This document shows positions 12,435-63,968 of a stretch of DNA of 64,000 nt, one piece after another. Position 1 is the stretch's first letter, and every line of letters starts with the position of its first letter. The notes under the pieces are model-generated. The model saw only the letters and a list, made by a program, of their open reading frames with translations, had not been told where the DNA came from and ran no database searches. Where the stretch lies: positions 620,001-684,000 of the forward strand of contig CDRNST010000064.1 in the NCBI GenBank assembly GCA_977016875.1, in the 5' to 3' direction. The position numbers and the translations under genes are program-made. This stretch comes from Pavona decussata (lineage: Eukaryota).

Positions 12435-15400
12435 GAGCGGCTGCCTGTAAGAATCGAGAACTGCATTTCACCGACCACTTGGTCGAATTTCTGATATTTC
12501 GCCTGAAGATACCCTTGAATTAACTATTTTCGAAAATCATATTTTAAAGTTCCAAGGTATTTTATTTTTTGAAAAAATTGTGAGAGTTTGAAATGCGGCC
12601 TAGGTGCAGTCACGGGCCGATGAAAACCGCAAAAAATTTAGGTCAAAGGACGAAGCACCGTTCACGATGTAAAATAACCCAATGAACTTGAAACTTTACA
12701 CAAACCTAGACCAACCATCACACAAGAAAATTAATACAATAAACATTCCAAACTCGCTGGCTGCTTTCTAAAGCATGCAGATTTGTGTACGCTACTCAAA
12801 ATGGCCTCGAAACTAATGCCTATTTTCATTAAAATTAAAGTGTTTCTGGTATGTCATTTTCTCTAAATTAAATCTCATATCTCAAAAGACGAAGAAAAGA
12901 ACTTTTTTTGTTCCAAGTTTCAACCTCTGATTCAAACTCTTTCCCACTCAAGGAAGATCGAATATGCGTGCGATACTTGCGGCTCGCAATTCACGTCACG
13001 AACTATGAGATCAGAACCGATTCACAAACACTTGACATCTGGAGCCCATGAATGTTTCCAAACATCACATATTAGCCCCTAAAACTAATCAGATTGACTG
13101 AAGACAGCCATTCAATGTTTTTCGATCCCAGATTTCTTTCCTATTCTGCTCTAAAATAATACAGTTATTCCGGTCAATTGGCCTACGACACATGTGCAAC
13201 AAATTTGCATACCATTTCGATGTCGCAGGAAAAAGTAGTGCAAATCAAACTTTAAAGCTCTTTTATCTTCTTAAATGAAGCAGTCGATGAGTAAAATTGA
13301 GAAAAAAGGTGTGACTTTGTTCCTTCCGTGTTGTTTTGGGTGTTCGTTTTTAGCAGCGACGGCTCAATTCAATAAGCCAGTGTGACACTGAACAACTGTA
13401 ACCCGATATTCACTTTGTTGATGTGGGTAACGCACACATGATCCTGGCCAGGCACTTTGCGCGTTCAGGGCGCTTTCACAAAAGTACTGCTTGAGGGCCA
13501 AGCTATGACTACCCTGGTGATGATGACCTTGTCAAGCTTAAAGACCGTACAAGAGATTTGAGAGCCCACCTTTCCAGCTTTGTTTTTTTCCGCGAAAAAA
13601 CTCGACGTTAAAGCATTGACTTACAGTAATGCAGATCATGGAACGTCGATTTTTCGCAAAAAAAAATCTATCCATAACTACCATCCCTACAATTAAAAAT
13701 ATAAAATTTTTAACTTTGAGGGTATCAGAGTAGTGATTTCCCCACCGACCAACCCGACCTCCCCCACCCCCGTCCCCATCCCCCCTTGCGATAAGCGTCA
13801 ATTGTGGTTATTTTTTACTTTCCTAAACCGGTTTTCTCGTTGTTCCTGCCAGTTTCTTTCAATTTCCGAGAAGATAGGAATCTTGCCAGCCTTGGTCTGT
13901 CTGATGATGGCCACGAAAACTATCTTATTAGCGCAAGCGGGTGAGGGCCGTAACTACCTTATCACTAGCACGTGCGGGTGAGGGCCGTGTTTCGCCTATA
14001 CATTTTCCAGTTTCAGATTTCCTGTTATTATTTTTTTTCACGGAGTTGAAAAAAACTGGCAGGAGCAGCGAGAAAACGGTCATTAGGAAACTAAACAATA
14101 ACCACAGCATTATTGACGCTTATTGCTAGGGGGGAGGGGGAAGGTCGGGCTGATGGTCGGTGGGAAATTCACTACTATCCTCTCAAATATACAGATTTTA
14201 TATTTTCAATTGTGAGGAAGGTGGTTATGGGTGTTTTTTTTTCTTTTCACGAAAAAAAATCGACGTTCCAGGGTCTGTATAACTGTAAGTTAAAAAACGA
14301 AATGACACTGACACTTGAATTTTTTTTGCAAAAAAAAAAAACAACAACAACCAAAGCTGGGCTAGGGCGGCTCGCATCTCTTGTACAGTCTTTTAGCTTG
14401 ACAAGGTTTTCATCACCAGGGTAGTCGTAGCTTGGCCCACAAGCAGTAATTTTCACTATTTACAGTTTCTATAAGTGCCCTGTACGCGCAGGATTACATA
14501 CCAAAATGCCTGGCCGAGATCACGTGGGCGTTACCCACATCATCGAAGTGAATATCCAGTTACAGTTGTTCAGTGTCAGGCTAGCTTATTGAATTGAGCC
14601 GTCCCTGCTAAAAACGAACACTCAAAACAACAAGGAAGGAACAAAGTCACACGTTTTTCTCCATTTTACTGATCGGCTGCTTCATTTAAGAAGCTAAAGG
14701 AGCTGTAAAGTTTGATTTGCACTACTTTTTCTTGCGACATCGAAATGGTATGCAAATTTGTTGCGCAAGTTTCATATGCTAATTGACCGGAATAACTATA
14801 TTATTTTAGAGCAGAATAGGAAAGAAATCTGGGATCGAAAAACATTGAATGGCTGTCTTCAGTCAATATGATTAGTTTTAGGGCCTATTATGTGATGTTT
14901 GGAAACATCCACGGGCTCCAGATGTCAAGTGTTTGTGAATCGGTTCTGTTCTCATAATTCGTGACGTGAATTGCGAGCCACAAGTATCGCACGCATATTC
15001 GATCTTCCTTGAGTAGGAAAGAGTTTGAATCAGAGCTTGAAACTTGGAACAAATAAAGTTCTTTTCTTCGTCTTTCGAGATATGAGATTCAATTTAGAGA
15101 AAATGACATACCAGAAACACTTTAATTTTAATGAAAATAGGCATTAGTTTCGAGGCCATTTTGAGTAGCGTACACAAATCTGCATGCTTTAGAAAGCAGC
15201 CAGCGAGTTTGGAATGTTTATTGATTTAATTTTCTTGTGTGATGGTTGGTCTAGGTTTGTGTAAAGTTTCAACTTCATTGGGTTATTTTACACCGTGAAC
15301 GGTGCTTCGTCCTTTGACCTAAATTTTCACGGTTTTCATCGGCCCGTGGCCGCACCTAGGCCGCATTTCAAACTCTCACAATTTTTTCAAAAAATAAAAT

Positions 15401-15524
15401 ACCTTGGAACTTTAAAATATGATTTTCGAAAATAGTTAATTCAAGGGTATCTTCAGGCGAAATATCAGAAATTCGACCAAGTGGTCGGTGAAATGCAGTT
15501 CTCGATTCTTACAGGCAGCCACTC
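12435..15524. mobile_element. Non-autonomous foldback DNA transposon with ~1.4-kb TIRs, Sola3-type (GAG...CTC termini, TTAA target)
   Basis: 12435-~13872 is the reverse complement of ~14037-15524. Ends are GAGCGGCTGCCTGTAAG and CTTACAGGCAGCCACTC, flanked by ATAA and TTAA. No coding capacity. Confidence 0.85.
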
Positions 15525-15835
15525 TTAATGGAAGAATTCATATACTTCATGGTGATGGGTATATTAGTTATTCAACTCTGGAGTATTTATTGACTAACAG
15601 TGACGTGAGAGCTGGGCGTTTTCATCTTCTACGTAAAATCTTTAAAAAAAATTGCCCAGAACGGCCAGTTATATCTGGTTGTAACACACCCACAGAAAAA
15701 ATATCTCCTTTTGTGGATTATCATTTGAAACCTTTGGTGCCTCCCTCTTATGTCAAGGATACTAATGACTTTTTGAACAAACTTAAAGATATGGAGAAGT
15801 TTGTGGAAGGAACAATTCTGGTCACTCTTGAAGTA

Positions 15836-32499: not shown

Positions 32500-32899
32500 A
32501 TTGCCTGATTTCATACCGTGGGGGTCTGGGTACGAGTCTGTGTATTATGGGTTATGGGACTCAACACCCACATAGCCGGAAAGAGCACATCGAACTTTAC
32601 AACATCCTCAAGTTTGGTGTCAATCAAGCTAATATTAGGCGAGATACAGCCATTCAAAAACTTAAAAATTTACTAAGAAATGTATGGAACGCCAGACGTG
32701 TGTCCGGCGTTCCATACATTTCTTAGTAAAATTTGGAGTTTTTTAATGGCTGTATCTTTCCTAATATTAGCTTGATTAACACCAAACTTGGAAATGTTGT
32801 AAAGTGCGGTGTGCTCTTTCCGGCTATGTGGGTGTTGAGTCCCATAACCCATAATACACAGACTCGTACCCAGACCCCCACAGTATGAAATCAGGCAAT
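32500..32899. mobile_element. 400-bp fully palindromic MITE
   Basis: attgcctgatttcatac... mirrors ...gtatgaaatcaggcaat, with the symmetry centre at about 32699. Confidence 0.85.
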
Positions 32900-42885: not shown

Positions 42886-45800
42886 TCAATTGTGTTGTGA
42901 ACATGGTTCTCCATCAAAAAGATCGCACACACAGTCAAGATTCATGTCATCACTGTCACGGTCCGCATAGCCGTACGGATAGGACACGAAAGTGTTTGGG
43001 TTGACCACCCGTTTGTCAAACACCAATCCGTATTGTTTGGTTCTGGGGATGACCCGTAGCTCTTTGGTGGCAGCATTGCGTGTGAAAAAGTAGGGGTTGA
43101 CCACATCCACTTGTCTCCTTTCTGCTTGGGGTGATGTGATTTCATCAATGACATTTTGCTTTAATACGGGGTAATTAAGCTGACTTGCACCACGCACGTT
43201 TCCAAGTGTGAATCCACGCACTTTGCATTCGACTTTACCCTCGGCTGTGACGTAACCGTAGTTTTTGGGGCCGCCCGATGTGAAATCGACGATGTGATCT
43301 CCGTCGGATAACTCGTTGGTTAATTCACCCAAGTAATCCCCCACATCCAGTTTTGGTTCACAGGGAAGTTGACGGTAGATGACGGAATCTGTATCGAAGT
43401 AGAGGACTTGTTGTTGAAGAGTTTTGAGATAGGAATACAACTTCAATCTGGCGTGACATGTTGTGAAAGCTTCGATGAATATGTTTGTTTTGCCGTTTTC
43501 TACACACTCATCGTTTGGGGAATTGTAGACTAACTCTAAGCGTTCTTCACTGCAAATTCGAACTGAGGTGATTTCGCGTAGAGGGTCGAGAACAACCTGA
43601 TAAAGCTCGTCTGGTGCACTCACGGCAATGGTGGAGGCTTTGTTTAGATTTTCACCAAATTTACCCCAGAAGGAGTTGAGCATAAGCTTGGCGGTGGCTT
43701 TTTTTCCGGGGTTTTTTGCGATGCAGACAGGATCGAGGTTGATGCCTTCTTTTTGCGAGTAGTTAGCCACGTATTCTTCCTTTTTGGCGGGGGTGTCGAC
43801 CCAACCCGGATAGCCACTGGCTTCTGTTTTGATCTTTAACCAGGTGTTCACGTATTGCTTGAATAGACCCTCTTTTTGCTTTGAAGGGGGAAAATTCCAC
43901 ACTTCATGAATGGTTAGAATGACATACCCTTGTGTGACAGCTTCTTGTAACTCGGGCGTACACCACGTGCCAACGAGTTGTCTTTCTTCCACGCTATGTT
44001 TGCAAATGAAGGTCCTCTCTTGCATGGGTTTTTCCATTTCTGTTTCGACACAGGTGCGACAAAGCGGAAACGTGAGCTTTCCACCATGACGAAGGGGAAG
44101 AACGGGATGGAACAACCAACGTGGTGGAAGGATGGTGACTTTGGCCAACCCAAAGAATTGATTTATGTTGACATTTTCTAATCCTGTGGTGATGATGTCG
44201 GGATGCTTGACAGGATATGTTTTGTACTTGTTTACCCAGGGGTAAAGGGAAGTGACATCCTGATAATGGATTTTTTCTTGGTCATCGACATGATGATAAA
44301 GCTGGACGGCGTTGGTTCTTCCACCGAAAAAGGCATCACGGGGGCGAAGCGGGGAAACGAAATGTTGTGAAGCAAGAAACGTTTTGAGTGTCTCGTTGTT
44401 TTTGCATTCACGTTTCCAATCGCATTCCCACGCAGTGAAGAGATGAAATCCTGCTGCGCGGATTTTGTCAGCTTTGAGAAGGGTTGCACTGTAGGAATCC
44501 TGGAGGGATAATTCAGGCCTTTTGTTTGTGCAGAGGAACCGCTTGTCAGGGTAACAACGAGGACATCCGTGAAAGAAGCAACCGTTGTATTCGTAGACGG
44601 TGTTTGTTGACGAGTCGAATCCATCAACGAGATAACCGGCAACACGTACTTCCCCACCATTGAATGCGTGTCGTATACGGTCAGCTGTGGCCTCACCAGG
44701 TTGACTTAGTTGTTTGTTTTTCCATGTGAGCCACTGTCTTGCTTGAAAGGATTGATTTGACTGAGCACCTTGCCATCCTTGGGGAGGTTCGACAGCTATG
44801 GTGCGCGGTTCTAATCTCTTCTTTCGCCAATAACGATGACAGGCGGAAGCGATGGTGATACACTTTTCGAGGGGGTTGAAGTCGGCCTCCTGTCTGAACT
44901 GTTCGATGAAAGAACGACAACCGGCTTTGAGAAGTTTGACGTCTGATTCACAGTAGGATTTCATTTCGTTGACGAGGGTGAATTCATAATTGCTGGCGAC
45001 TTTGCTGGCATGCCACCGTAGAAAGTCTTCTTTCTTTTTTTAGGACATTCCGTCGGGATCGTAGTATCAAACGTCAGGCATAGCACCACTGTATGTCTGG
45101 TTTTCGTCAGTATTGAAGAGATGTGGGAAATAACCTTTGCAGAGTTCTGTGAGCCCGAATGTTGCGGGAAAGGAGGACAGCGGGAATGGAAGAAAGCAGA
45201 GTGAATCCTTGAACGTGATGCGGTCGCTGCGAAAGGACAACACTTTGGCGCCAATGGAAACCATGCCTGTGACTTCTCGATGATTTTCATAACAGTGTTG
45301 CAGCAGGAACATACCGTCGTACCCCTTTAGGTTATGGAAGAAGACGATCACATTTCTGTCATCAGCGTCAACATCTACAGCGAGATCTTCAAGCGATTCC
45401 ATGAAGCTGTCAGTGCAGTTTTCACCATAGATGACTTGACAATCGTCTGACTCGTCTGTCTCATACCAAATCAAGATGGGTGATTGTACTCCACCTACAT
45501 CAGTAATGGCTTCAAAATCAGCATACACCAACAACGGGGGTTCTCTTTCAACGACAACATACTCATCGGTTTGTTCGATGACAACACGACCTGCCACATC
45601 AGCTGGATACACTTTCTTGGTTTTGGGGAGATCATCGTCTTCATCGACTTGTTGTATGAAGCAAAGGTGTTTAGAGATTTCCACATGCTTTTCACAATTC
45701 TTGCATTTAGCCCACCCACATTTGTTCCGAGGACCTTTGGGTTTTCCATCACGTTTGTATTTGATCTGATAATTTTTGCAACAAGCTGGGCAGTATTGAC

Positions 45801-47001
45801 TGTAGTCGCATACACTCTTGGTGTTGATGGTTCCTTTGATGGAATGGTTGGCTAGACATTGTTGCCCGTAGAATTTGCGACAACATATTTGACACTCTGC
45901 GAGTGGTTTGGAACGAACACCAGTGGTACCATTTACGGCATCGGAAAAATCTGTACAGTTGCGATTGAAGCAACTTTGACACTGATCTTTATTGCAGCTG
46001 TGGTGTTGGATGTCTTCGCTGTTGTAACCTCTGTTACAGTTGTGGCAAAAATAGGACTTGTTGAGAAATCCACCAAAAGATGTGCATCCGTCAAAGTGTT
46101 CTCCGTCTTGAATGAGGAGAATGAGTTTGGTGGAATCAACGGGACCAGCGTAAACAATCATGTGAGGTCGACCCATTTTCAAGACTTTGATTTGGTAACC
46201 AGTTAAGACGGTCTGAAATTTGGCAATATCTTCTAAATTACACGCCCCTTCTGTAACACCTGCGAGAGTGTGGAGTTCTCTTGCTTTGAGTGCTTGAATT
46301 GAATGACCTCGACGGAGGGATTGGTAACTGGTCACAGGTGTCTCTCCGTTTTGTTCGTCTGCCCAGGCCTTCATGGTGACAATGGCACGCGCACAGCAAA
46401 GGGTGTCTTTGTTCTTGATTGATATACGACTTCGTTTGGTTATGCCACGTACGGCGGCTTTGACGGGACCATATTTGGTTTTACCACTACCAGCTGGTGG
46501 CATACGTATTGTGGTGACATCCATACTGAAGTTTCCGTCAGGGTCGAAGGATTGGTTAGAGTTGAGTTGTTTGGCTAATTGTTGAAGGTAGGTTCCAAAA
46601 CGAGGTGTGTTGTCTTCCACTTCTTGTGCGAAAAAATGTACGGATTGATGACAATGATTGTTTGAAGCTGAGAAGGCATTTGATTGAAGTGTGAAATGGA
46701 TTCGATCTTGAGGGTTGAGTGATTGATCCGAAAGGGTGTGTCTTAACGCGCGATGAATGGCATCAGCCAATTCCCCACCCAGATCATCTCCTTCGATAGG
46801 GGCTCGAAGTTGTTGTAGGTTTGCATTGAAGCGTGAACGTTGAACGATGTTTCTCCACCGTCGTGGTTGCTGAGCGGGTTGAAGGTTGAAATGAAAGAGG
46901 GCTTGTTCACCTCCACCGACTTGCACCACAGGATCCAAATCCACCTCATGACACCACTCATCATCGTCGGACCAGTCAATCATCGAATCTTCATTTGCCA
47001 T
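42886..47001 (-). pseudogene. Protein-primed family B DNA polymerase (pPolB) with two in-frame nonsense codons
   Basis: ExoI YADFE, ExoII HNLKGYDG, YQDVTSLYP, KLMLNSFWGKFG, YFDTDS; inserted Vsr-like nuclease motif VDGF...YEYNGCFFHGC. ORFs 45067-47067 and 42886-44964 are in the same frame, separated by TGA (45067-69) and TAA (45040-42). Confidence 0.95.
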
Positions 47002-47048
47002 CGTGAAGTTAGTGGATTGAGAAAGCGCGGTCCTTCTTTTATAGGGTC

Positions 47049-47135
47049 TGAGATCATGTGAGATCATGTGAGAGCATGTGAGATCAATGTGAGATCATGT
47101 GAAATCATGTGAGATCATGTGAGATCATGTGAGAT
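47049..47135. repeat. Tandem 10-bp repeat (TGAGATCATG) x ~8.5 in the divergent promoter region
   Basis: Directly visible; lies between the pPolB start and TATAAAA at 47190. Confidence 0.9.
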
Positions 47136-47329
47136 TGGAGGGTACCCATCCCCCAATGTGTACCCAGGTTTCTCTCGGTCAGGAGAGAGTATAAAAGGAA
47201 TTACGTTGTGTTATGTAGCGTGAAAATTGTTGAAGGGATGTTTTCAAAGGCAAAGAGGATTGGACGTGTCGTTACTCTGATTAGTCGTGTTGTGTATTTG
47301 TGGTGTCAAATTCATTTCTTGCCTTACAT

Positions 47330-47815
47330 ATGGCTTCCAATAGCGAGAGTGGCTTATCCAGTGGTCGGCCTCCTAAGCGGAGTAATGAAGATGCGTATTA
47401 CCGTCAGTCGTCATCGGGGTTACACAAGAATCGAAGGAAACGCAAGTATGCCATGATCGACAACGCACACCGCACGTTTAGGACAAAGGAACAATGGGTC
47501 AAATTTGATTTGAAGATGACATTGCTGCCTGAGTCACGACCAATGGTGTTGGCATCCAAAGAAAATCTGGAAAGATATGACATTAAGATGGCTTCATTGA
47601 AAGCAGGAGTGGAGAGCGACTGGGATAGATTACCTCAGGAACTTCAGGAAAGAATCTACGAACAATCTGTCATGCTGCACGCTCGAGAACAACACGAAGC
47701 AAAATGGAAATCCATTATGGCGGATGTAATGTCTTTTGGAGATTGCACTTGTTCCAATAATCCTGACTGCGATGGACACCACCCCAGGAATGTCTTGATC
47801 AATTGGAGATATAAG
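47330..47815 (+). CDS. Predicted constant exon of the spliced cassette gene (162 aa): NLS, F-box-like motif, Cys/His cluster
   Basis: TATAAAA at 47190; ATG at 47330; KNRRKRK; WDRLPQELQERIY; CTCSNNPDCDGHH; ends at phase-0 donor AAG|GTGAGA (47815/47816). Confidence 0.8.
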
Positions 47816-47877
47816 GTGAGATATAGAAAATAAGTGTTTTTAATTTTTGAACACCACTATTTTTTTTTTTTTGTTAG

Positions 47878-48177
47878 TGTGGTGTTCAAGCAATCACGGA
47901 AAAGGATGTACGATTGAGTTTACGATCGCTTGATGCTAAGGAAAGAGGATATTCTATTGTACGTACCGAAAGAGGTTTTAGGGAAGGGGAGCGTCGCGAG
48001 AGATTAATACGTTGTTGGCATCACGAGTGTGGTTTTATAGGGTGTCGGTATTTTATGAGTGGTTGGCCTTTGCTGGGTACCCACCATGTGTGTAGGATAT
48101 GTAGACGTCCTGTTAGTCATGAATTACTCTTAAGATATCTGTGTGAAATTAGTCTGCCGTGTGAAATTAGTCTTTGA
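47878..48177 (+). CDS. Alternative terminal exon 1 (99 aa, Cys/His-rich)
   Basis: T-run+gttag acceptor; open in phase 0 (CGVQAITEKDVRLSLRS...); no start ATG. Confidence 0.75.
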   Translation, partial: CGVQAITEKDVRLSLRSLDAKERGYSIVRTERGFREGERRERLIRCWHHECGFIGCRYFMSGWPLLGTHHVCRICRRPVSHELLLRYLCEISLPCEISL

Positions 48178-48189
48178 ATTTTGTTTTAG

Positions 48190-48612
48190 ATGAAAAATTT
48201 TAGTAGAATCGACGCTGACAGCCGTATTGACGTTTCAAGTGTGGGTGGTGTCTACAGATGGTACAGATTTAAAGAGAGGAGCATGAAAAGCATGGAGGAA
48301 ATTTCGCCATTTCGTGTTGATCAAAGAATTTATATCCTTAAGTTTTATGAAAGATTTGAATTGTTGGATGAATATGATAAAGTATGTAATTGTTGCTTTG
48401 CACACAAGCGAATGATTTTTGGAAGCGAACTTGTGTACTTTAACATACCCATTTTATGTTATAATACACACAAAAAGCCAAGAAGGTGTGATCCTATTTC
48501 ACGGGCACGCGTTTTCATGGGATACAAACAAGATTATTATAAGTCGTTTAGTCAAAAGAGGTTGGAAGACGGTTCCATTTCGAATGTGTCATTTAGAATT
48601 GTCAATCGTTGA
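48190..48612 (+). CDS. Alternative terminal exon 2 (140 aa)
   Basis: ttttgttttag| acceptor; paralogue of exons 3 and 4; CNCC motif. Confidence 0.8.
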   Translation: MKNFSRIDADSRIDVSSVGGVYRWYRFKERSMKSMEEISPFRVDQRIYILKFYERFELLDEYDKVCNCCFAHKRMIFGSELVYFNIPILCYNTHKKPRRCDPISRARVFMGYKQDYYKSFSQKRLEDGSISNVSFRIVNR

Positions 48613-48624
48613 TTTTTTTTTTAG

Positions 48625-49071
48625 TTGGAAACATTATCTGCAGCCAATGTTGACTGTCGTATCTCACCTGGAGCTGTTGGAGGATTAAAACGATCACACA
48701 GATACAATCTTTGGTGGCACCGTTTCTATTATTACGGCAATAGTAGTCTTGTTGTCAGAGAAAGAATGGTGCTCGTTCAAAATCGTGTATATAACGATAT
48801 TTGTGAATGTTGTAAGGAGGAAAAGAATTGGCTAGTGAGACAAAGACCCAACCCTAGACATAATTTGGAGGATAGAATGAAAACAAGAAGAAGCGATGAC
48901 GGCTATAAACATGGCGATTATATTAAGTATACTCATATATATTATTGTCAACCTTTTGTTAGAGGTTTTAGATATATAAAATGGCGCAATAAGTTAATTG
49001 CAGAGACCCGTAGTCAAAAATGTTTAGGAAATGGAAAGTTCGATTCGAAATCATTCAGATATATTAAATGA
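48625..49071 (+). CDS. Alternative terminal exon 3 (148 aa)
   Basis: T10-ag| acceptor; starts at TTG, and homology to exons 2 and 4 begins well before any ATG; CECC motif. Confidence 0.8.
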   Translation: METLSAANVDCRISPGAVGGLKRSHRYNLWWHRFYYYGNSSLVVRERMVLVQNRVYNDICECCKEEKNWLVRQRPNPRHNLEDRMKTRRSDDGYKHGDYIKYTHIYYCQPFVRGFRYIKWRNKLIAETRSQKCLGNGKFDSKSFRYIK

Positions 49072-49086
49072 TTTGTATTTTTGTAG

Positions 49087-49500
49087 ATGAATACCATGAA
49101 AAAGCTCGGTACAGATTGCCGTATTTCTGTTAAAAGTGTTGGAGGATTGCAACGTGGGGATCGTTATTTGGAGTGGATGGAAGCCTATTTGTATGATGGT
49201 TATTTGTTTCACAATCGCCTGGCTTATTTGTATAACGAAAGGCAAGCCTTGTATTCGGCGGCTTATCCGAAAAGATGTATTTGTTGTGATCTATCATACA
49301 CGGAATATGTACCTCAAATGTTTAAACATAACCTTTCCGACGAACTGTTTAATAAGTTTTATTTTCCACCGGCACACGCGTGTTATTGTAGACCGGGTAT
49401 TAGGGGAGTTATCATGAAGGGTAACCATATTCAGACATTGAGTCAAAAATGTTTGGGTAATGGGATGTTTGACACGGTGGCTTATCGTTATGTAAAATAA
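49087..49500 (+). CDS. Alternative terminal exon 4 (137 aa)
   Basis: tttttgtag| acceptor; CICC motif; paralogue of exons 2 and 3. Confidence 0.8.
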   Translation: MNTMKKLGTDCRISVKSVGGLQRGDRYLEWMEAYLYDGYLFHNRLAYLYNERQALYSAAYPKRCICCDLSYTEYVPQMFKHNLSDELFNKFYFPPAHACYCRPGIRGVIMKGNHIQTLSQKCLGNGMFDTVAYRYVK

Positions 49501-49512
49501 TTTTTTTTACAG

Positions 49513-49736
49513 TGTCATTGTCCATTTTTGAGTGGTGTAAAGTCAAGAACCTACCCAGGACCTATCCAACGTTTGACGACTAGAGGCTGTATTCGAATGC
49601 GATCCCACTTGAGTAGATATGTTAGAGCTTTACGTAAACGGATGTATGTGCATATATTAGATGAGGGTTGCGCGTGTTGTGTTTGAAATGGAGAATGATT
49701 GAGTGTCGTTTGCGAAATCCTATTTTGATTTTTTGA
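49513..49736 (+). CDS. Alternative terminal exon 5 (57 aa as is; a frameshift at ~49681 truncates a ~73-aa frame)
   Basis: ttttttttacag| acceptor; CHCPFLSG...CACCV*; the shifted frame LKWRMIECRLRNPILIF* ends at 49736. Confidence 0.65.
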
Positions 49737-49748
49737 TTTTTTTTGTAG

Positions 49749-50036
49749 ATGGATTGGTGGTATAGCAATGACGCGTCAGGTTTGAGAGTGATGGATCGTA
49801 AACTTTCAAAGATTGGGTGGTGGGGGCAACGAATGGGAGGAGTTTTTATGGAGATGTTTTGTGCTGGCTATGCTGCATCTGTTGAGCGAGAAAGAAAAAT
49901 GGAGGAAATATGGGATAATGAAATGGGACCTGTATGGTTTGACGCAGAGTGTGTTTGTTGCAACAGATCATTTTATGATTGTGCAATTTTAGACGTGGAT
50001 TTTGAATTTGGTACAATAAAATCTGAATATTATTGA
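49749..50036 (+). CDS. Alternative terminal exon 6 (95 aa)
   Basis: ttttttttgtag| acceptor; CVCC motif; paralogue of exon 7. Confidence 0.8.
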   Translation: MDWWYSNDASGLRVMDRKLSKIGWWGQRMGGVFMEMFCAGYAASVERERKMEEIWDNEMGPVWFDAECVCCNRSFYDCAILDVDFEFGTIKSEYY

Positions 50037-50049
50037 TTTTTTGTTTTAG

Positions 50050-50364
50050 ACTGATTTTTGGCGAGCTGATTATGATGGTCTGACGACATATTTGTTGGGT
50101 CCTTTTGATTCAAAGTTGAGCGGACTGGTGTACATTGGACGCTTACTTGGGGACGAGATAGTAGTGCGTTATCAAAGAGATGAATCGATTAGAGAGGTCA
50201 CGCGAGAGAGAATGTTTAAGATATGGAATGAAGATGTAATTGATTTGAGAGATGACTGGAATAGTGTGTTGTGTGAATGTTGTGGTAATTCGTATGTCAT
50301 GTGTGCACCAAAAAAAGATATGTTTAAAGTTTATACGTGGGTTAACGCTTTGCAATTTGTATAG
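50050..50364 (+). CDS. Alternative terminal exon 7 (104 aa)
   Basis: ttttttgttttag|ACT GAT TTT TGG in phase 0; TDFW aligns with MDWW of exon 6; CECC motif. Confidence 0.8.
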   Translation, partial: TDFWRADYDGLTTYLLGPFDSKLSGLVYIGRLLGDEIVVRYQRDESIREVTRERMFKIWNEDVIDLRDDWNSVLCECCGNSYVMCAPKKDMFKVYTWVNALQFV

Positions 50365-50649
50365 GCTGATTATACAACACAACCTTATGATGTTTGGATG
50401 GATAAATGGTATGACGAAAGACTTGCTCACAAGAGGATGCGTAAAGGAAGAAAGCTTGGTCGATCTCTGTTGAATGAATATCATCGTTTTATACCGTTTT
50501 ATGTGCCTTTTTTAGTTGAATACCAAATTAGTATACCAAAATACCAAGAACAAAACTTGAGAAGAAGGATGCGGGTCGAAATATATGTTTTTAAAGCTTT
50601 AGGTCGTGGAATAAGAGGACATTGTTTACCTGTTACTTATCCTTTTTAG
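50365..50649 (+). CDS. Alternative terminal exon 8 (94 aa)
   Basis: Acceptor is the TAG stop of exon 7; ADYTTQPYDVWMDKWY... open in phase 0. Confidence 0.7.
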   Translation, partial: ADYTTQPYDVWMDKWYDERLAHKRMRKGRKLGRSLLNEYHRFIPFYVPFLVEYQISIPKYQEQNLRRRMRVEIYVFKALGRGIRGHCLPVTYPF

Positions 50650-50883
50650 GTTATCGACACATATAACTGCCTGTCAGCGGTGTGGGATGATGGATGCAAC
50701 ACGATGAACGCTTATCATAAAATTTTGAGTAAAAGAATCATGGGTACCAATTACTGTCGGAAATTTCGTCCCAATGCAAATTTGTATTTTGAAATGCTCG
50801 TTATGTACGATAAGCTGGTTGAAGATTCTCCTCATAAGTGTTGTCATCATTATCCTAAACTACAAATTTATTATTGTAGGTAA
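50650..50883 (+). CDS. Alternative terminal exon 9 (77 aa)
   Basis: cctttttag| acceptor equals the stop of exon 8; VIDTYNCLSAVW... Confidence 0.75.
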   Translation, partial: VIDTYNCLSAVWDDGCNTMNAYHKILSKRIMGTNYCRKFRPNANLYFEMLVMYDKLVEDSPHKCCHHYPKLQIYYCR

Positions 50884-51059
50884 TAGAGACGGTTTGCTGT
50901 TTGCTGATTGTACCGACCTATTTGACTTGGAGTACCTTTGATAAAAAACTTAGTTTTAGAATCATGGATATGGAGCCTGAAATTACACGATACCCAAACT
51001 TTGATGATGAGATTATGAGGATGTATGAATTAGTCCTTAGAGAACAAACTCATTTTTAA
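50880..51059 (+). CDS. Alternative terminal exon 10 (59 aa; not in the ORF track)
   Basis: ttattgtag|; VIETVCCLLIVPTYLTWSTFDKKLSFRI...DDEIMRMYELVLREQTHF*; clear paralogue of exon 11. Confidence 0.8.
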   Translation, partial: VIETVCCLLIVPTYLTWSTFDKKLSFRIMDMEPEITRYPNFDDEIMRMYELVLREQTHF

Positions 51060-51066
51060 ATTGTAG

Positions 51067-51300
51067 GTGGAAGATGCTACTTGCTGTTTGTTGCTTGTAC
51101 CAACCTGTTTAAGTTGGAACTCTTTTGATAAAAAACTTAGTATTAGAATTGCGGGTGAAAAGCCTGAAAATATATGTACACCTCGCAACGTCTTTTTGGA
51201 TGATGAGTTTATGAGGATGTATAGGTTAGTGCTTAGGGAACAAGCACATATTTGTAATACACATAATTGTAATATTTGTAATTATGTATTTGATTTGTAG
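51067..51300 (+). CDS. Alternative terminal exon 11 (77 aa)
   Basis: attgtag|GTG; VEDATCCLLLVPTCLSWNSFDKKLSIRI...DDEFMRMYRLVLREQ. Confidence 0.8.
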   Translation: MEDATCCLLLVPTCLSWNSFDKKLSIRIAGEKPENICTPRNVFLDDEFMRMYRLVLREQAHICNTHNCNICNYVFDL

Positions 51301-51525
51301 ATTCTTGATTTAAAAAACATCCCCCTTACGTGGATTGAAGAGAGACATCCTCACCTGTCAGCGGGTAGAGTTATGGCCGCCAAACAGATCGGTTTTAAAT
51401 TGTGGAATTATTTGGTGCAATACGATGATGGGTTGTTACACACGGACCATTTGATGAGATATTTGCTTTTGAAAAAAGAAGTAGATGAATTATATTTTAA
51501 AAACTCTCTTGATTTTTGGATTTAG
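51301..51525 (+). CDS. Alternative terminal exon 12 (74 aa; not in the ORF track)
   Basis: Acceptor is the TAG stop of exon 11; ILDLKNIPLTW...KKEVDELYFKNSLDFWI*. Confidence 0.7.
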   Translation: MLDLKNIPLTWIEERHPHLSAGRVMAAKQIGFKLWNYLVQYDDGLLHTDHLMRYLLLKKEVDELYFKNSLDFWI

Positions 51526-51828
51526 ATTTACAAGATTGTGCGTTTGTGGTATTACTCTCCCATATCCGCAAGAGCCTCGCATTCCATTTACTGCGAATCC
51601 ACTCTCCGTCTCGTAGCAGTCGAAAGAATTATTGCTAGCAAGCAATTTATCAAGGAACATTTACTTTCTACATACTTGAATGAAATAGATAGGATGTACT
51701 GTTTATCTGTTCGCGAAGCCGTGTGGGATATGAAAAGATCATTTTGTAACGAAAGACCCCCTTGGTATGATTATGAGACAGACATGAATGAGCGTTTGTT
51801 TCATTTATTTTTATTAAATTCCTTATAG
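51526..51828 (+). CDS. Alternative terminal exon 13 (100 aa)
   Basis: Acceptor is the TAG stop of exon 12; IYKIVRLW...NEIDRMYCL. Confidence 0.7.
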   Translation: MYKIVRLWYYSPISARASHSIYCESTLRLVAVERIIASKQFIKEHLLSTYLNEIDRMYCLSVREAVWDMKRSFCNERPPWYDYETDMNERLFHLFLLNSL

Positions 51829-52176
51829 GTAGAAAGAATTCTAAAAGGACATATTACAATCAATCTTGCTGAATTGAGAAGAATGAAAGGAAAAAGACGT
51901 CTAGAATTAAAAAGGATGTGTAATAAACTCGATGAAGCTAGTATTCTTTTTTTAATCTGGTACAAAAAACGGTTTCATTATTATGTTGATTACAATATTG
52001 ATTACAATTATCATAGAGAAATAGATCTGATGTATCTTCTTGTAAAGAATCAAGCTATAAGACTAATGAGAAATGACGGTTGTAAAGTCTATTACAGATG
52101 GATAGATGAAAGTGTAGGACTATGTACTTTTCGATTACAACACATGTTTTTAGGTCCCTCTACGTCATTGCATTAA
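51829..52176 (+). CDS. Alternative terminal exon 14 (115 aa)
   Basis: ttccttatag| equals the stop of exon 13; VERILKG...REIDLMYLL; ATTAAA overlaps its stop (52172-77). Confidence 0.75.
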   Translation, partial: VERILKGHITINLAELRRMKGKRRLELKRMCNKLDEASILFLIWYKKRFHYYVDYNIDYNYHREIDLMYLLVKNQAIRLMRNDGCKVYYRWIDESVGLCTFRLQHMFLGPSTSLH

Positions 52177-52673
52177 AGTTTGAGTTTGAGCTTAGTGTTC
52201 ATGATGTGTTTGACCATCTTCTCTGTGAGGGTTTTCTTCCCGGGAAAGGCCTTGATAGAGTCAATCATCTTTCTATCGGCAACATGTTTGTCCTTGAGAG
52301 ATTTAGCTTGATTGTAGTCAACGTCGTGTTGTCTCGCCACTTCATCCAACCGGTTAATGCCGCGATCCCCTCGGGCCAATCTCTTTTCCAAATGAGTTCC
52401 AAGTCCCGTAAAATTATGGTAGGGGAGGTGAAATTCAATGCCTGTTTTTCCCAAAAGTTTTGGAATGTCAAATCCGCTTCCGTCTTGAAGTATGACTTTT
52501 TTGGCTTTACGGTTTTTTCCGACGCCGCGTCTGCTTTTTCGTTGAATCTTTTTCACTTTCTTTGAGTTCCTGCAAGAGGTGACGCCTCGTTTTTTTGCCC
52601 TCGTACCAGTCGTCCCACCCCGGTTCTGGTCTGAGCCTCCTGACGGCACGCGGGGTTTTCTTTTTCTGACCAT
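52173..52673 (-). CDS. Parvovirus VP1u-type phospholipase A2 domain protein with basic N-terminus
   Basis: HNFTGLGT (Ca-loop variant of YxGPG) ... INRLDEVARQHDVDY (catalytic HDxxY). Confidence 0.85.
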   Translation of the reverse strand: MVRKRKPRVPSGGSDQNRGGTTGTRAKKRGVTSCRNSKKVKKIQRKSRRGVGKNRKAKKVILQDGSGFDIPKLLGKTGIEFHLPYHNFTGLGTHLEKRLARGDRGINRLDEVARQHDVDYNQAKSLKDKHVADRKMIDSIKAFPGKKTLTEKMVKHIMNTKLKLKL

Positions 52674-54858: not shown

Positions 54859-55566
54859 TCACGACCGGTTACTGGTTGAAATGCGTGTGACGGAAGGTCT
54901 CCCCCCATCTTTAAAGGTAGTGGTAATGGTGTTTGTGGTAGTTACACCAGCCACATGACGACCTCTGGCTTCTTGCACGTGTCGTTCCGCTTCCAGAGCC
55001 AATTGACGTTGTATTTCATCTTGATTCATTCGACGCCCGAATGAGTGTCGACTTCCGTTGCTACGGTTGCTTTGGTTGCTACGGTTGCTTTGGTTGCTAC
55101 GGTTGCTACGGTTGCTACGGTTGCTGCTATCATCGCCATCACTGGACGGTGTCGAGGATCTGGGTTGTTTTCCTGCCGAAGCATTTTGTCTTTCCCTTGT
55201 CCTTGGGGAGACGTGAATGGGAGAAGGCAATCTTTTTCCCGCTGATGGGTTCGTGTATGGTCGTAATCTAGCAGTAGCCACCGAGAGCGGAGCTGTACCC
55301 ACACCTGTGGATGTCGAGGGTTGTGGGGGTCGAGTCGGTGTTGATCCCGTACCCACATTACTGGGTGTAGTTCTTCGACTTTGAAGTGATGAGGATCCAG
55401 CACCGACATTCAAAGGAATTGTAGGTTGAGGAGACGGGTTTGGTGGTGTGTTCAAAGGCAAATTAAAACCGATCTCCGAAAGCATATCATTAGTGTCATA
55501 ATCATCCAAATTAACTTCATCCATTGATGCGAGATGACTAAAGTCAAAATCATTGTTGCTGGCCAT
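54859..55566 (-). CDS. Ser/Pro/Arg-rich Polinton protein with (SNR/SNQ)n repeat
   Basis: 235-aa intact ORF; 9-bp tandem repeat at about 55056-55127. Confidence 0.7.
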   Translation of the reverse strand: MASNNDFDFSHLASMDEVNLDDYDTNDMLSEIGFNLPLNTPPNPSPQPTIPLNVGAGSSSLQSRRTTPSNVGTGSTPTRPPQPSTSTGVGTAPLSVATARLRPYTNPSAGKRLPSPIHVSPRTRERQNASAGKQPRSSTPSSDGDDSSNRSNRSNRSNQSNRSNQSNRSNGSRHSFGRRMNQDEIQRQLALEAERHVQEARGRHVAGVTTTNTITTTFKDGGRPSVTRISTSNRS

Positions 55567-56158
55567 GACGGGGGTGGAAGTACTTCAAAAAAAACTGACT
55601 CGCTCTGCTGCTGAGATTTCTACACAGAACCAAAGCTGTAATATCCAGAGAATGAATCAATTCCGTAAAGTGTGTTTCGTTATATTCCTTGACGATAGCC
55701 ATGACCTCTTCAAACGTACCCCAACCAGAATGGTTCCGCCAGGATGTTTCTGTCCTTCTACCACACTCGTCTACAATCTTCATCAAGGTTTCTCTGTCCA
55801 TGTAGTCGTGTATTTCGGACTTGAGTTTGTAGCGACACAATTCGATGAAGGTTCTAAACTGTGGGTCCGAAGGATGCTTCAAACAGTTTGACTTGGCAAT
55901 GTGGTCAGACAAACCTTCTAGGTACTCAAAATGATCTTGAACCTTTTTGAAGGGAAAATGCCCCCACACTTCACGAACCTCTCTCAGGTTGGAAGCAAAA
56001 TGAATACAAAAGTTCAAGTTTTCATACGCTATCCGCAGATAAAATGGTCGTGCCCCAGGATGTTTTTTCTTAAACTCCTCAAGACTTTCACAATCACCCA
56101 ACTCAGCTTTACAGAGTTCTCTGAAAATATGAAATCGTTCTTGTGACCTTGTTTCCAT
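55550..56158 (-). CDS. Polinton hypothetical protein
   Basis: Intact ~200-aa ORF packed between the ATPase and the next gene; no domain recognised. Confidence 0.65.
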   Translation of the reverse strand: METRSQERFHIFRELCKAELGDCESLEEFKKKHPGARPFYLRIAYENLNFCIHFASNLREVREVWGHFPFKKVQDHFEYLEGLSDHIAKSNCLKHPSDPQFRTFIELCRYKLKSEIHDYMDRETLMKIVDECGRRTETSWRNHSGWGTFEEVMAIVKEYNETHFTELIHSLDITALVLCRNLSSRASQFFLKYFHPRHGQQQ

Positions 56159-56162
56159 CGTC

Positions 56163-56820
56163 TTAGTCCACTTTGTACACACGAGTCGGTCCCTCACTCT
56201 TCAAGATGTAACTGACCAAACGATTCTCGTCGTTACTTTCTGGATGAAAGTCTATGACCAAATAACCAAAAGGTCTGGCCGTAGCTTGTTTAAAGGCATC
56301 CATCACGTTGTGGAGGTTGTCGGGAAAAGCTTGTTGAACGATATTGCGCATGGCCACTTTGTCGCGTGGGTTTTTGAAGGCTATGATGTAATGAGCGTTT
56401 CTCGATATAGTTTTTTGATATTTGCCAGGGGGAAATAAATCCTGACACATATATATTACCGTAATGTTTCTATGATGCGAATGACGTGTGAAAATTTCAA
56501 CCACGGTCTTGTTGTCGCTAGCTTCGGCCATTAAATCATCCATCACCAATAAGCCTCCTTTAGGAAACCAGACATCCAAATCAGATTCCTCAGGAACTCC
56601 CTCATGGAACTTTACTCCTTTCTTTTTCATGTCATCAAATCTTTTTTGCCACGACCCGTAACAATAATGAATCGCGCGGGGTTTTTCAGTGAACAAATCC
56701 AGATTTAGTGTCACCAATTGTTGAACCAACACCGTTTTACCCGATCCGTTTTACCCGATCCGATGGACCGGCCATCAAGATATTGCAGGGTGAATGAAAG
56801 CGAAAACCACTGTTTGCCAT
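56163..56820 (-). pseudogene. A32/FtsK-like DNA packaging ATPase, Walker A disrupted by a short duplication
   Basis: MANSGFRFHSPCNILMAGPS[GSGKT]VLVQ; Walker B LLVMDD; HSHHRNITVIYMCQDLF; ccgttttacccgat repeated at 56732-56759. Confidence 0.9.
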
Positions 56821-56977: not shown

Positions 56978-57583
56978 TTAATGGATGAGGTGTCTCACTC
57001 CTCCTCTCGAACGTGCTGTGCCTTGAATGATCTTGACCGGTTCGCCATCTACCATGTCTTTCAACAGGGATTCTTTTTGCCATCTGCGTTCTTTACCGAT
57101 GAGATCACGAACAAAACGTCCCACTTTTTTATCATTCATTACATAGTTGGTCTTAAAAAAAATTTTCTCAAATTGAGACATTTTCTCTCCTTGAGATTTT
57201 GCTACCAAAAACATCAGCGCGTAGCCACCACAACTCTGATCGTAGATAGACTGAACACACCGTCCATTTCGTGTCACATATTTGAACTGTTTCAACCATT
57301 TGATGAGAGGAGCTGTCGTCTCGTACAACTCCAAATCCAAGGCAAAGCTATCAAAGATTTCACAGGTGTTTCCATCGATCCACACTCCCAACCAATGTCT
57401 CCCTCCCATGGATGCTGGATCCGTGTTCACAATCATCCCTCGAGGATGACTAACCTTGTCTGGTGGTGGAAGGGAATCGCAGGGTAAAGCTCCTTCATAA
57501 AAGGAAGCCAGTGTGGGGTGATGTAGAGCTAGTTGGTCCAATTGATCAGTATTGAGAATGACTTTTTCCATCTTCTTAACCAC
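56978..57583 (-). CDS. Adenain-like (C5) cysteine maturation protease
   Basis: IVNTD...GRHW (His), FDSF (Asp), VQ...SCGGY (Gln, Cys); intact. Confidence 0.9.
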   Translation of the reverse strand: MVKKMEKVILNTDQLDQLALHHPTLASFYEGALPCDSLPPPDKVSHPRGMIVNTDPASMGGRHWLGVWIDGNTCEIFDSFALDLELYETTAPLIKWLKQFKYVTRNGRCVQSIYDQSCGGYALMFLVAKSQGEKMSQFEKIFFKTNYVMNDKKVGRFVRDLIGKERRWQKESLLKDMVDGEPVKIIQGTARSRGGVRHLIH

Positions 57584-61846: not shown

Positions 61847-62902
61847 TCAACCACCAGCTCGTCGTATGGCAACTGTAGCGATCGTTTTTCCCTGTGGTAA
61901 TGTAGCAATTTTACCATCCAGATCAGCAATTTCAACCTCTATGATTTCCACTTCCATAGAACTCATGGGAATCCACTGATAATGAAGCGGTTCGACCAAT
62001 TGGCGATGATCATACTCGTCGTGCTTTAAAAACACTTCTCTCAAAAGTTGAGCCTTTTGACTTCCCATGAAGGTTGATTGAGCCAAGCTACAGTACACGT
62101 GCAACGATCTGGATTTGGTAGTGGTGTTTTTCAAAAAAGCAGCGTTCTGACCTGAAAAGTGCCAGTTACATGTGCGAGAAAAGACCACTCGGGGTCTTCT
62201 AGGTCCTATGGGGTACGCGTGATTGTTCAAACCCCAGTATGATCGATTACCAGAATGTATTTCAGTTATTCTTGACTCGTGGTATTGTCTTCCACCTGTT
62301 GCCGTTTGAAGCTGTGTGCGAGGTGAGGCACCGGTCAAATAGTAATCACCCCTTGCATTCATTTCGAGCAGCCCCATCTTCAAACAAAACTCGAGGTCGA
62401 GTTCAAAACTAACCCCCACATTATTGTGGTCTTGATCATTAAAATCCACCTCCACGGTACCTTGTGCTACATCAACTTTAATCTCAAAGGAACGGTCCAC
62501 ATAAGTTCTTACTTCCTTTCTATTCCATTGTGTTGTTTGTACTTGCAACATATGTTCGATTTCGGTGGCTATTTTTTCTGAAATTCGACGCCACAACTCC
62601 ATCCCGGTCGTGATGGGAGGACCTCCAAAAATTTCGTGTGCCACCAATTCTTTTGAAAGTGACGATTGGTTACCATCCACATCCTCCACTCGGATGGAGA
62701 ATTTCACCAAAACATCATATTGGGTCACACCAAAACTCTCCATACCGAAATGTTGATTGGGAACGGACAAGGAGATCAAGGCTGCCTCCCATTCTTCTCC
62801 CTTGGGTAAATTGATTCTATCCTCCAAACGCACTTTAAAAGACGTATTGGTGTTGTTGGGAAATTCCAGAGTGGGATCACTTATGACCAGAATGCGGGAC
62901 AT
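61847..62902 (-). CDS. Minor capsid (penton-like, single jelly-roll) protein
   Basis: SDPTLEFPNNTNTSFKVRL...WEAALISLS at the N-terminus; LHVYCSL...MGSQKAQLLREV...EPLHYQWIP...IEVEIAD at the C-terminus. Confidence 0.85.
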   Translation of the reverse strand: MSRILVISDPTLEFPNNTNTSFKVRLEDRINLPKGEEWEAALISLSVPNQHFGMESFGVTQYDVLVKFSIRVEDVDGNQSSLSKELVAHEIFGGPPITTGMELWRRISEKIATEIEHMLQVQTTQWNRKEVRTYVDRSFEIKVDVAQGTVEVDFNDQDHNNVGVSFELDLEFCLKMGLLEMNARGDYYLTGASPRTQLQTATGGRQYHESRITEIHSGNRSYWGLNNHAYPIGPRRPRVVFSRTCNWHFSGQNAAFLKNTTTKSRSLHVYCSLAQSTFMGSQKAQLLREVFLKHDEYDHRQLVEPLHYQWIPMSSMEVEIIEVEIADLDGKIATLPQGKTIATVAIRRAGG

Positions 62903-63968
62903 GGTGTAATCGTATGACGTCTTTCTTTGACACCCAACTGTCGTACTTGGTGGGCCACCCCTTCCAACGGACGAGTACTCTGTTTCCTTGTCTTTTCACT
63001 ATCTTTTCGATGCGAAACACGTCGTCGTCCTTGGCATCCACCTTTTGAAGATCTTCGTTGTAAAACGTTCCTTTTATCGGAGTTCCATCCCATTCCACAA
63101 TCTTGTACGTGTTGATGGGACCGCGTCTCGCCTCAGACACCAAAAACACCTCCTCGGTCCATCCAGGCAAGTAACTCTTCTTGAATGTTCGAAACTTCTT
63201 GTTCAATCTCACACGGTCGCCTTTTCGAAAACGTGTCTTCGCTGGTTTCTTAGCCACGTCGCTACCATACAACGTGTTCCATACCTTGGGGGTGTTTTCC
63301 AAAGTGACGTCTTTAGGTGCCATACCGATGCTTCTATGATACGAAGCATTGTATCCCCGTACGAGTTGAGTAAGGACATCCAAAAACGAAAGGGTGTTGT
63401 AGACCGTAAAATATCTATAAAGTCTATCCTTAAATGTGCGGTTGAAGCGTTCCACGACGCTGGCCTTGGTATCTCCCGAAGTCGAAAAATGATGAATGCC
63501 CTTCTTCCTCAACATGTTTTGAAAATGACTGTTGTAAAACTCCTTTCCATCATCCGTTTGAAGTGTTTTCGGTTTTCTTCGACCAGCTACCAATCTTGAA
63601 AAAGCTGTCGTCACGGAAAGTCCTGTTTTCGACTTAAGGGGTAACACCCACGCAAATTTGCTGAACACGTCGATCACACATAACAAGTACTTTACACCGC
63701 GATTCCATTTTGCAATGTTTTGTACCTCGATTAAATCTGCTGCCCATTGTTCGTTGGGTCCATGTACCATAACACGTGAGGTGGGAAAACGTCTGCGAAC
63801 GGGTTTATGGAGAGAATACCCCAGATCGCGCTTCAATACGGCTTTCACTCTTTTCACAGACACCCCTTGAGCTTTAGCAAATCGTTCGGCACCGCCCAAA
63901 CTACCGGGTTGTGTCGGATCCCTATATCTCCTCAACAATTCGCCATTGGTGATTCTTTTTTTCTTCAT
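62877..63968 (-). CDS. Retroviral-type (rve) integrase with C-terminal chromo-like domain
   Basis: WAADL, QTDDGKEF, VVERFNRT (DDE); FRIEKIVK...VLVRWKGWPTKYDSWV; intact 363 aa. Confidence 0.95.
   Translation of the reverse strand: MKKKRITNGELLRRYRDPTQPGSLGGAERFAKAQGVSVKRVKAVLKRDLGYSLHKPVRRRFPTSRVMVHGPNEQWAADLIEVQNIAKWNRGVKYLLCVIDVFSKFAWVLPLKSKTGLSVTTAFSRLVAGRRKPKTLQTDDGKEFYNSHFQNMLRKKGIHHFSTSGDTKASVVERFNRTFKDRLYRYFTVYNTLSFLDVLTQLVRGYNASYHRSIGMAPKDVTLENTPKVWNTLYGSDVAKKPAKTRFRKGDRVRLNKKFRTFKKSYLPGWTEEVFLVSEARRGPINTYKIVEWDGTPIKGTFYNEDLQKVDAKDDDVFRIEKIVKRQGNRVLVRWKGWPTKYDSWVSKKDVIRLHHVPHSGHK

Follow-up and report, generated by a model that had tools for sequence, protein, structure and literature searches.

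The right third of a 64,000-nucleotide (nt) stretch of Pavona decussata DNA (contig CDRNST010000064.1 of assembly GCA_977016875.1, forward-strand positions 620,001 to 684,000; hereafter the window, which contains no N letters) is, judged by its genes, an adintovirus/Polinton-like element. Its accessory-gene region contains a unit, divergent from the gene for the protein-primed family-B DNA polymerase (PolB), that looks like a splice array. The best explanation of positions 47330–52176, and one that we consider moderately likely, is a single spliced unit in which a first exon is joined to alternative terminal exons.

We propose that a 5′ coding exon of 162 codons, constant in all products, ends at a phase-0 donor, for which the host spliceosome would have a choice of up to 14 alternative 3′ splice sites. 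Each acceptor would open a terminal coding exon (hereafter cassette; C1 to C14, Table 1) that runs to its own stop codon, and in the compact half of the array the stop TAG would double as the acceptor of the next exon. A single poly(A) signal, overlapping the last stop, would probably serve all the mRNAs. Their predicted products would have a common head, with a stretch resembling a nuclear localization signal (NLS), a weak F-box/PRANC-like helix and a Cys/His half-site, followed by mostly Cys-rich tails of 57–148 residues that would have arisen by tandem exon duplication. We infer splicing itself, the use of all 14 sites, the promoter, the poly(A) sites and the function from the DNA.

Exon 1 and its donor

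A first-pass annotation of the window had placed the start of exon 1 at the ATG at 47330 and a phase-0 donor at 47815/47816, and both coordinates are exact. On this strand, the donor pattern AG/GTRAG occurs nine times in 64 kb, and the site at 47816 is the sole one within 47.0–52.3 kb. It lies six codons before the stop of its open reading frame (ORF) and in phase 0, a placement with a chance probability of about 1e-3. Unspliced read-through of exon 1 adds five codons before the stop.

To define the exon 1 family, we searched exhaustively with HMMER, first with exon 1 itself and then with a profile. The family consists of 13 protein clusters: that of exon 1 itself (P0001) and 12 relatives with 32–48% identity to it, found mostly on long ENA contigs and in some cases on short Logan contigs. 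One further match of 1137 residues (P0014) was discarded as a low-complexity tandem repeat. The motif W..LP.E(L/I)...MSFG.C.C.....C..HHPRNVL(I/V)NWRYK is shared across the family, and homology ends exactly at the K of its last five residues (NWRYK), with 58% identity in the last 35 residues and 15% in the next ten. The residue after this boundary is Val, encoded by a GTN codon, in all 13 clusters, and the second residue is Arg or Ser in nine of them. The tails beyond the boundary are 4–75 residues long, lack conservation and are often rich in Phe, Cys or Val; such unconserved, Phe-rich tails fit translated T-rich introns.

This is the pattern of ORF callers reading through a conserved exon–intron boundary, and it is the strongest single piece of evidence for exon 1 as a putative 5′ exon. 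Judged by the invariant Val codon in these proteins, the phase-0 donor is conserved across the diverged family. The homology break and the GTN codon, present in every cluster, thus indicate that the donor claimed in the annotation is real and has been kept in diverged relatives. In one branch of the family, formed by the relatives P0013/P0018/P0019 and P0017, the ORF runs 50–77 residues past the conserved boundary, and these extensions show weak mutual similarity. The tails of P0013 and P0017 (75 and 50 residues) can be aligned weakly, with a large gap. We treat these long tails as read-through, and they are possibly intron-less fusions of a head and a tail.

Cassettes, acceptors and alternative explanations

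All 14 cassettes begin at the positions that had been claimed for them, their coordinates are exact, and their phase-0 reading frames are open from base 1 on. They tile 4.3 kb almost without gaps, again as claimed, the spacers from each stop to the next start being 12, 12, 15, 12, 62, 13, 0, 0, −4, 7, 0, 0 and 0 nt. A stop and the following acceptor overlap in six cases, five times as one and the same TAG and once, at C9/C10, by 4 nt. The earlier count of ATG as first codon, in only three of the 14 cassettes, also holds. Twelve of the cassettes lie in one reading frame, and 90% of the 4.3 kb is covered in one frame by stop-free runs of at least 57 codons, compared with a maximum of 25% in 500 shuffles. 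We read this common frame, together with spacers that are divisible by three in four of four cases, as the footprint of in-frame tandem duplication.

Splice and other signals were sought with generic patterns (GTRAG, YAG, AATAAA/ATTAAA, TATAAA, LxCxE and CxxC). Every cassette directly follows a YAG. At 13 of the 14 boundaries the acceptor is an in-frame TAG, as compared with a TAG share of 27% (P ~5e-7), which means that a stop-to-stop ORF begins exactly at the acceptor. At least seven T occur in the 12 nt before the YAG at 12 of the 14 boundaries, as opposed to 6.9% of TAGs elsewhere (P ~1e-12). The zone free of AG before the acceptor extends over at least 17 nt at all boundaries and over at least 20 nt at 13 of them, against a baseline of 26% (P ~3e-7). 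The other 80 YAG sites in the array are followed by a median of 6.5 open codons, and 1.25% of them reach 57. As a control, 18 further ORFs of the element were compared; four of them follow a TAG and two follow a T-rich tract. Donors are missing from the ends of all cassettes, and the array as a whole contains just two GTRAG, so the cassettes can only be terminal exons. A genetic code that reads TAG as sense was ruled out, as TAA, TGA and TAG are each found at boundaries and each serve as stops in the element's other genes.

The cassettes fall into four paralogue groups (C2/C3/C4, C6/C7, C9/C10/C11 and C13/C14). The annotation held that homology between paralogues begins at the acceptor. This stands for C2/C3/C4 and C9/C10/C11, which are similar from residue 1, and for C6/C7, similar from residue 2; in C13/C14, similarity is confined to the C-terminal halves. 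Profile-profile comparison of the groups gave motif-level matches only (CxCC, D.KLS and E..RMY.L), with probabilities below 5%. In the 11 cassettes without an initial ATG, the first Met lies 11 to 59 residues in. Between C10 and C11, the youngest pair, the overall ratio of nonsynonymous to synonymous substitution rates (dN/dS) is 0.38; for the 28 codons before the first Met of both it is about 0.29, in what is a small sample. The direction is clear: the codons 5′ of the first Met appear to be maintained as protein by purifying selection. The absence of ATG in 11 of the 14 cassettes, homology from residue 1 and a dN/dS below 1 before the first Met argue that the cassettes need an upstream start.

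At least eight contigs in the same assemblies carry copies of the element, and the cassette ORFs that were looked up there (C2, C4, C6, C8 and C13) recur on several contigs. A word-based search, which can miss distant kin, found no relatives of C2–C4 outside these assemblies. One sister sub-lineage has a sense codon in place of the C12/C13 boundary triplet, and both cassettes form one ORF there, which means that cassette number varies and that a lost boundary joins exons instead of breaking them. The annotation had looked to sister elements for a conserved donor, AG and phase with a variable number of cassettes. The donor is indeed kept in the exon 1 family and cassette number does vary, but the stop and AG of C12/C13 are absent in that one sub-lineage.

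Several observations weigh against a splice array. The later acceptors are weaker, with 6–7 T in 12 nt. The common frame of 12 cassettes is not required by splicing. Three first codons are ATG and four are near-cognate (7 of 14, P ~0.01), a hint at start codons of their own, past or present, in the cassettes; these may descend from small genes that began right after a leader acceptor, by analogy with adomavirus late genes. The databases contain the exon 1 family as unspliced read-throughs throughout (for six clusters the source is Logan read assemblies, of DNA or RNA), and no fusion of exon 1 with a cassette was found among 5.8 or 1.84 billion proteins in searches whose length windows admitted most fusions. 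An out-of-frame upstream ORF (about 47208–47456, plus strand) has its ATG between the candidate TATA box and the ATG of exon 1 and overlaps the start of exon 1; it may modulate translation, or transcription may start downstream of it. The fusion of C12 with C13 in the sister sub-lineage counts here too, as do two stop codons in the PolB gene, owing to which this copy may be inactive. Of the array that the annotation had proposed, the donor, the 14 acceptor-bounded, phase-0 and mostly ATG-less ORFs and the purifying selection before the first Met bear scrutiny, whereas a protein joining exon 1 to a cassette did not emerge from the databases.

We regard it as unlikely that exon 1 is spliced to C1 only, by a constitutive 62-nt intron that would yield a protein of 261 residues, with C2–C14 as relics of small ATG-starting genes or expressed by themselves from internal or near-cognate starts. 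One acceptor is enough for a conserved donor, and the intron to the nearest one would be of a typical short length. The enrichment of ATG and near-cognate first codons (7 of 14) and the lack of fusion proteins in databases point the same way, and adomavirus late genes provide a precedent for acceptors just 5′ of ATGs (bioRxiv 10.1101/341131). This leaves 13 further boundaries with the full acceptor signature and AG-exclusion zone, and cassette ORFs that are all open in DNA of 35–37% GC. In addition, the sequence before the Met is kept between paralogues with a dN/dS below 1, and starting at internal Met codons would lose 11 to 59 conserved residues.

The layout of common 5′ exons followed by 20 to more than 30 alternative 3′ exons is also that of Drosophila mod(mdg4) and lola (PMC6237743), where joining occurs largely in trans. 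Cassettes might likewise be transcribed from their own internal promoters, for which TATAAA matches inside C3 could speak, and be joined in trans to the exon 1 transcript. This seems improbable: all cassettes lie on one strand, with spacers of mostly 0–15 nt that are too short for promoters, the unit is flanked by just one TATA/ATTAAA pair, and cis-splicing is simpler. With this version counted in, a splice array of either kind is likely.

More improbable still is a polycistron, with exon 1 as its first cistron, that is resolved by spliced-leader (SL) trans-splicing with a leader that supplies the AUG. Such a leader, ending in AUG, is documented in flatworms (PMC9851317), and it would also account for ATG-less ORFs that are open in phase 0 after the acceptor. 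In an SL operon, each cistron would be expected to have its own ATG near the acceptor; three of the 14 cassettes have one at that place. The family-wide donor at the end of exon 1 is left unexplained, one particular host phylum is needed, and poly(A) signals are absent between most cassettes; a scan of the window with Rfam gave neither an SL RNA nor any other match, although this is uninformative. A decayed ORF of about 1,400 codons that was cut by nonsense mutations, or a set of chance ORFs, is very improbable despite the single frame of 12 cassettes, the two PolB stops of this copy and the one boundary that a sister sub-lineage reads through, because 13 of the 14 boundaries are TAG with T-tracts and AG-free zones (P 1e-6 to 1e-12), the boundaries match the starts of paralogue units, the bounded ORFs C2, C4, C6, C8 and C13 recur on other contigs of the same assemblies, and shuffles never approach the observed coding density.

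Predicted transcripts, products and the surrounding element

A 10-bp tandem repeat spans the start codon of PolB and the divergent region toward exon 1, and its units may be binding sites for a regulator. Hexamers of the poly(A) type (AATAAA/ATTAAA) start in four cassettes: at 49063 in C3 (8 nt before the end), 50015 in C6 (21 nt), 51813 in C13 (15 nt) and 52172 in C14 (4 nt). Their positions hint at a shared 3′ end with possible sub-families, that is, at 3′-coterminal mRNAs like those of adenovirus late regions. The plus strand of the array (48000–52000) has a strong skew of G over C (0.23–0.30) at a GC content of 35–37%, unlike the rest of the element.

Protein searches were run exon by exon. 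Pfam gave nothing above threshold for exon 1 or the 14 cassettes, in which it found no BTB, C2H2 or FLYWCH domain and no DnaJ domain, and a motif scan found no LxCxE in any of them. CxCC occurs once in each of six cassettes (C2–C7). Exon 1 contains a basic, NLS-like stretch, the helix with W..LP.E(L/I) and an end of the form SFG-C-x-C...C..HH..NWRYK. Over this helix, three of the 13 family members have a sub-threshold match to PRANC (best E = 0.0022, 18.7 bits versus a cut-off of 25.8), while the exon 1 of the window itself has none. The family profile had no matches among PDB sequences. An AlphaFold model of exon 1, built from 13 sequences, has a predicted local distance difference test (pLDDT) score of 63; only residues 80–135 are confident, the Cys/His end is of low confidence, and the model matched no fold in PDB or BFVD. 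The model of C4 (pLDDT 41) was unusable.

That the products are early or host-manipulating adaptor proteins is a guess. We put forward the hypothesis of a constant recruiting head with variable target-binding tails. In a tentative and rather doubtful elaboration, these would be combinatorial adaptors whose conserved head recruits a host machine (perhaps a ubiquitin ligase of the cullin type, by way of the PRANC/F-box-like helix) and whose rapidly evolving, lineage-specific tails are chosen by splicing. The library of tails would grow by tandem exon duplication and be remodelled by gain or loss of a single TAG that serves as both stop and acceptor.

The assignment of the element to the Polintons, as made in the annotation, is backed by Pfam matches to the protein-primed PolB, an adenain-type protease and an integrase with rve and chromo domains (Table 1). 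The PolB gene of this copy keeps a single frame over its 1394 codons, without frameshifts but with two in-frame stops. Donor- and acceptor-like intron signals were sought around both stops and none were found; a PolB intron as a sign of splicing elsewhere in the element was thus ruled out, and the interruption consists of the two stops. Given these stops, this copy is probably not autonomous. The gene for a phospholipase A2-like protein is convergent to the array and is the first of a minus-strand virion/accessory module. Among the remaining minus-strand ORFs, sequence searches against Pfam and PDB gave no match to double or single jelly-roll capsid proteins or to a packaging ATPase. On the right, the element extends beyond the window, and a search inside the window for a matching arm of a terminal inverted repeat found none.

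The virion module (52.2–64 kb) also contains a pair of inverted repeats with 132-nt arms (94% complementary) that enclose about 2 kb, probably a nested insertion of a small transposon. At 54859–56732 on its minus strand, three successive ORFs that overlap in different frames may represent three genes or a single one. Pfam gave no match for 14 ORFs of the flank outside the element (1–42 kb), and Rfam and tRNA scans of the window were empty. The flank contains nested inverted repeats at 12432–15527 (arms up to 674 nt at 95%) and a hairpin-like inverted pair of 198 nt with a 4-nt spacer at 32500–32899. Its ORF at 11674–12144 (plus strand) is identical on two contigs, of 1.33 Mb and 347 kb, from the ENA assemblies ERZ25073751 and ERZ25073805, respectively, which resemble long-read metagenome assemblies, and it carries the precomputed Pfam tag DUF8422.

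Table 1. Coordinates in the window of the putative splice array, its candidate control elements and other genes of the element.
Feature	Position	Strand	Description
Constant exon 1	47330–47815	+	486 nt, 162 codons; ends AAG/GTGAGA between codons
Shortest intron	47816–47877	+	62 nt; donor GTGAGA, T13 tract, TAG
Cassette 1 (C1)	47878–48177	+	99 codons; Cys/His-rich, start without ATG
Cassette 2 (C2)	48190–48612	+	140 codons; ATG start, CxCC motif, paralogue of C3 and C4
Cassette 3 (C3)	48625–49071	+	148 codons; first Met at codon 48, homology to C4/C2 from residue 1
Cassette 4 (C4)	49087–49500	+	137 codons; ATG start, CxCC motif
Cassette 5 (C5)	49513–49686	+	57 codons; sole CAG acceptor, ends just past CxCC motif
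Cassette 6 (C6)	49749–50036	+	95 codons; ATG start, different frame, paralogue of C7
Cassette 7 (C7)	50050–50364	+	104 codons; stop TAG is C8 acceptor
Cassette 8 (C8)	50365–50649	+	94 codons; stop TAG is C9 acceptor
Cassette 9 (C9)	50650–50883	+	77 codons; 4-nt overlap with C10 acceptor
Cassette 10 (C10)	50880–51059	+	59 codons; 57% identity to C11 from residue 1
Cassette 11 (C11)	51067–51300	+	77 codons; stop TAG is C12 acceptor
Cassette 12 (C12)	51301–51525	+	74 codons; stop TAG is C13 acceptor
Cassette 13 (C13)	51526–51828	+	100 codons; stop TAG is C14 acceptor
Cassette 14 (C14)	51829–52176	+	115 codons; last of the array
10-bp tandem repeat	47049–47135		8.6 copies, 92% matches; Tandem Repeats Finder, score 151
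Candidate TATA box (TATAAA)	47190–47195	+	140 nt 5′ of the exon 1 ATG; putative, pattern match
Candidate common poly(A) signal (ATTAAA)	52172–52177	+	Overlaps last stop of the array; putative, pattern search
Protein-primed family-B DNA polymerase (PolB)	42886–47067	−	Pfam DNA_pol_B_2, E = 5e-25 and 1.2e-9, two ORF pieces
Phospholipase A2-like domain gene	52173–52673	−	Pfam Phospholip_A2_4, E = 1.9e-7
Adenain-type cysteine protease	56978–57583	−	Pfam Peptidase_C5, E = 9.7e-6, 25.8 bits (cut-off 21.3)
Retrovirus-type integrase with C-terminal chromodomain	62877–63968	−	Pfam rve E = 3.1e-14, Chromo E = 2.7e-5

Comparison with known systems

The annotation had compared the array with the protocadherin and UGT1 loci. 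Protocadherin and UGT1A genes do combine variable and constant exons by splicing, but their polarity is opposite: it is the first exons that are variable, numerous and each equipped with a promoter and donor of its own, and the exons at the 3′ end that are common to all. Closer in arrangement are viral early regions. Polyomavirus T antigens and cytomegalovirus IE1/IE2 are each produced from one promoter and a shared 5′ exon with alternative 3′ partners, which gives them a common N-terminus but distinct C-termini. Unlike the array with its 14 cassettes, these regions make two to five isoforms with a shared head. We know of no description, in viral early or late units, of a stop codon that doubles as the next acceptor. 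In adomavirus late mRNAs, acceptors lie just 5′ of each ORF (10.1101/341131), but the leader of adenovirus and adomavirus late units is non-coding and each ORF has its own ATG.

Adintoviruses carry "Oncoid" accessory genes upstream of PolB, which are defined by LxCxE and paired CxxC motifs (PMC8502044). The array occupies the same genomic position, would encode small proteins rich in Cys motifs, and lies in an element with an adintovirus-type gene set. Unlike Oncoids, it contains no LxCxE, and six of its cassettes have single CxCC motifs only. The word splicing occurs zero times in the Oncoid paper (PMC8502044), and our search of the Polinton and adintovirus literature found no description of splicing or of such an array. 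A possible functional analogy exists with the ankyrin/PRANC adaptors of poxviruses, in which a constant motif that recruits a cullin ligase is combined with many target-binding parts. However, the array has no ankyrin repeats, and poxvirus diversity comes from separate genes rather than from splicing.

To our knowledge, 14 exons in 4.3 kb would be the densest array of alternative terminal exons. Should the junctions exist, the accessory proteome that a mobile, virus-like element draws from 4.8 kb would be enlarged about 14-fold by means of the host spliceosome, and one triplet would both end the protein of one exon and begin the next exon. The logic of a shared head with different tails, as found in the early regions of DNA tumour viruses, would then extend to Polintons and adintoviruses. 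The array would also be a natural system for one donor choosing among many acceptors and would show how exon libraries diversify. ORF-based annotation would miss such proteins entirely, with unspliced read-throughs or internally started fragments as their database entries.

The most similar layout is found in Drosophila lola, with five common exons and 20 alternative 3′ exons, and mod(mdg4), with four common and at least 31 alternative ones (PMC6237743). Like these loci, the array has a common N-terminal exon and many tandem alternative 3′ terminal exons, and the variable exons are paralogous, Cys-rich and tandem-duplicated. Unlike it, lola and mod(mdg4) are cellular genes with BTB in their common part and C2H2 or FLYWCH domains in their variable parts, none of which Pfam found in the array. 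Their exons are joined largely in trans, with separate promoters and in some cases from the opposite strand, whereas the array lies on one strand within 4.8 kb, with spacers of 0–15 nt (62 nt before C6). If its junctions are real, the array, as reconstructed here, would be a viral counterpart of lola and mod(mdg4) that works like them, although it is a homologue neither of these loci nor of the viral early regions.

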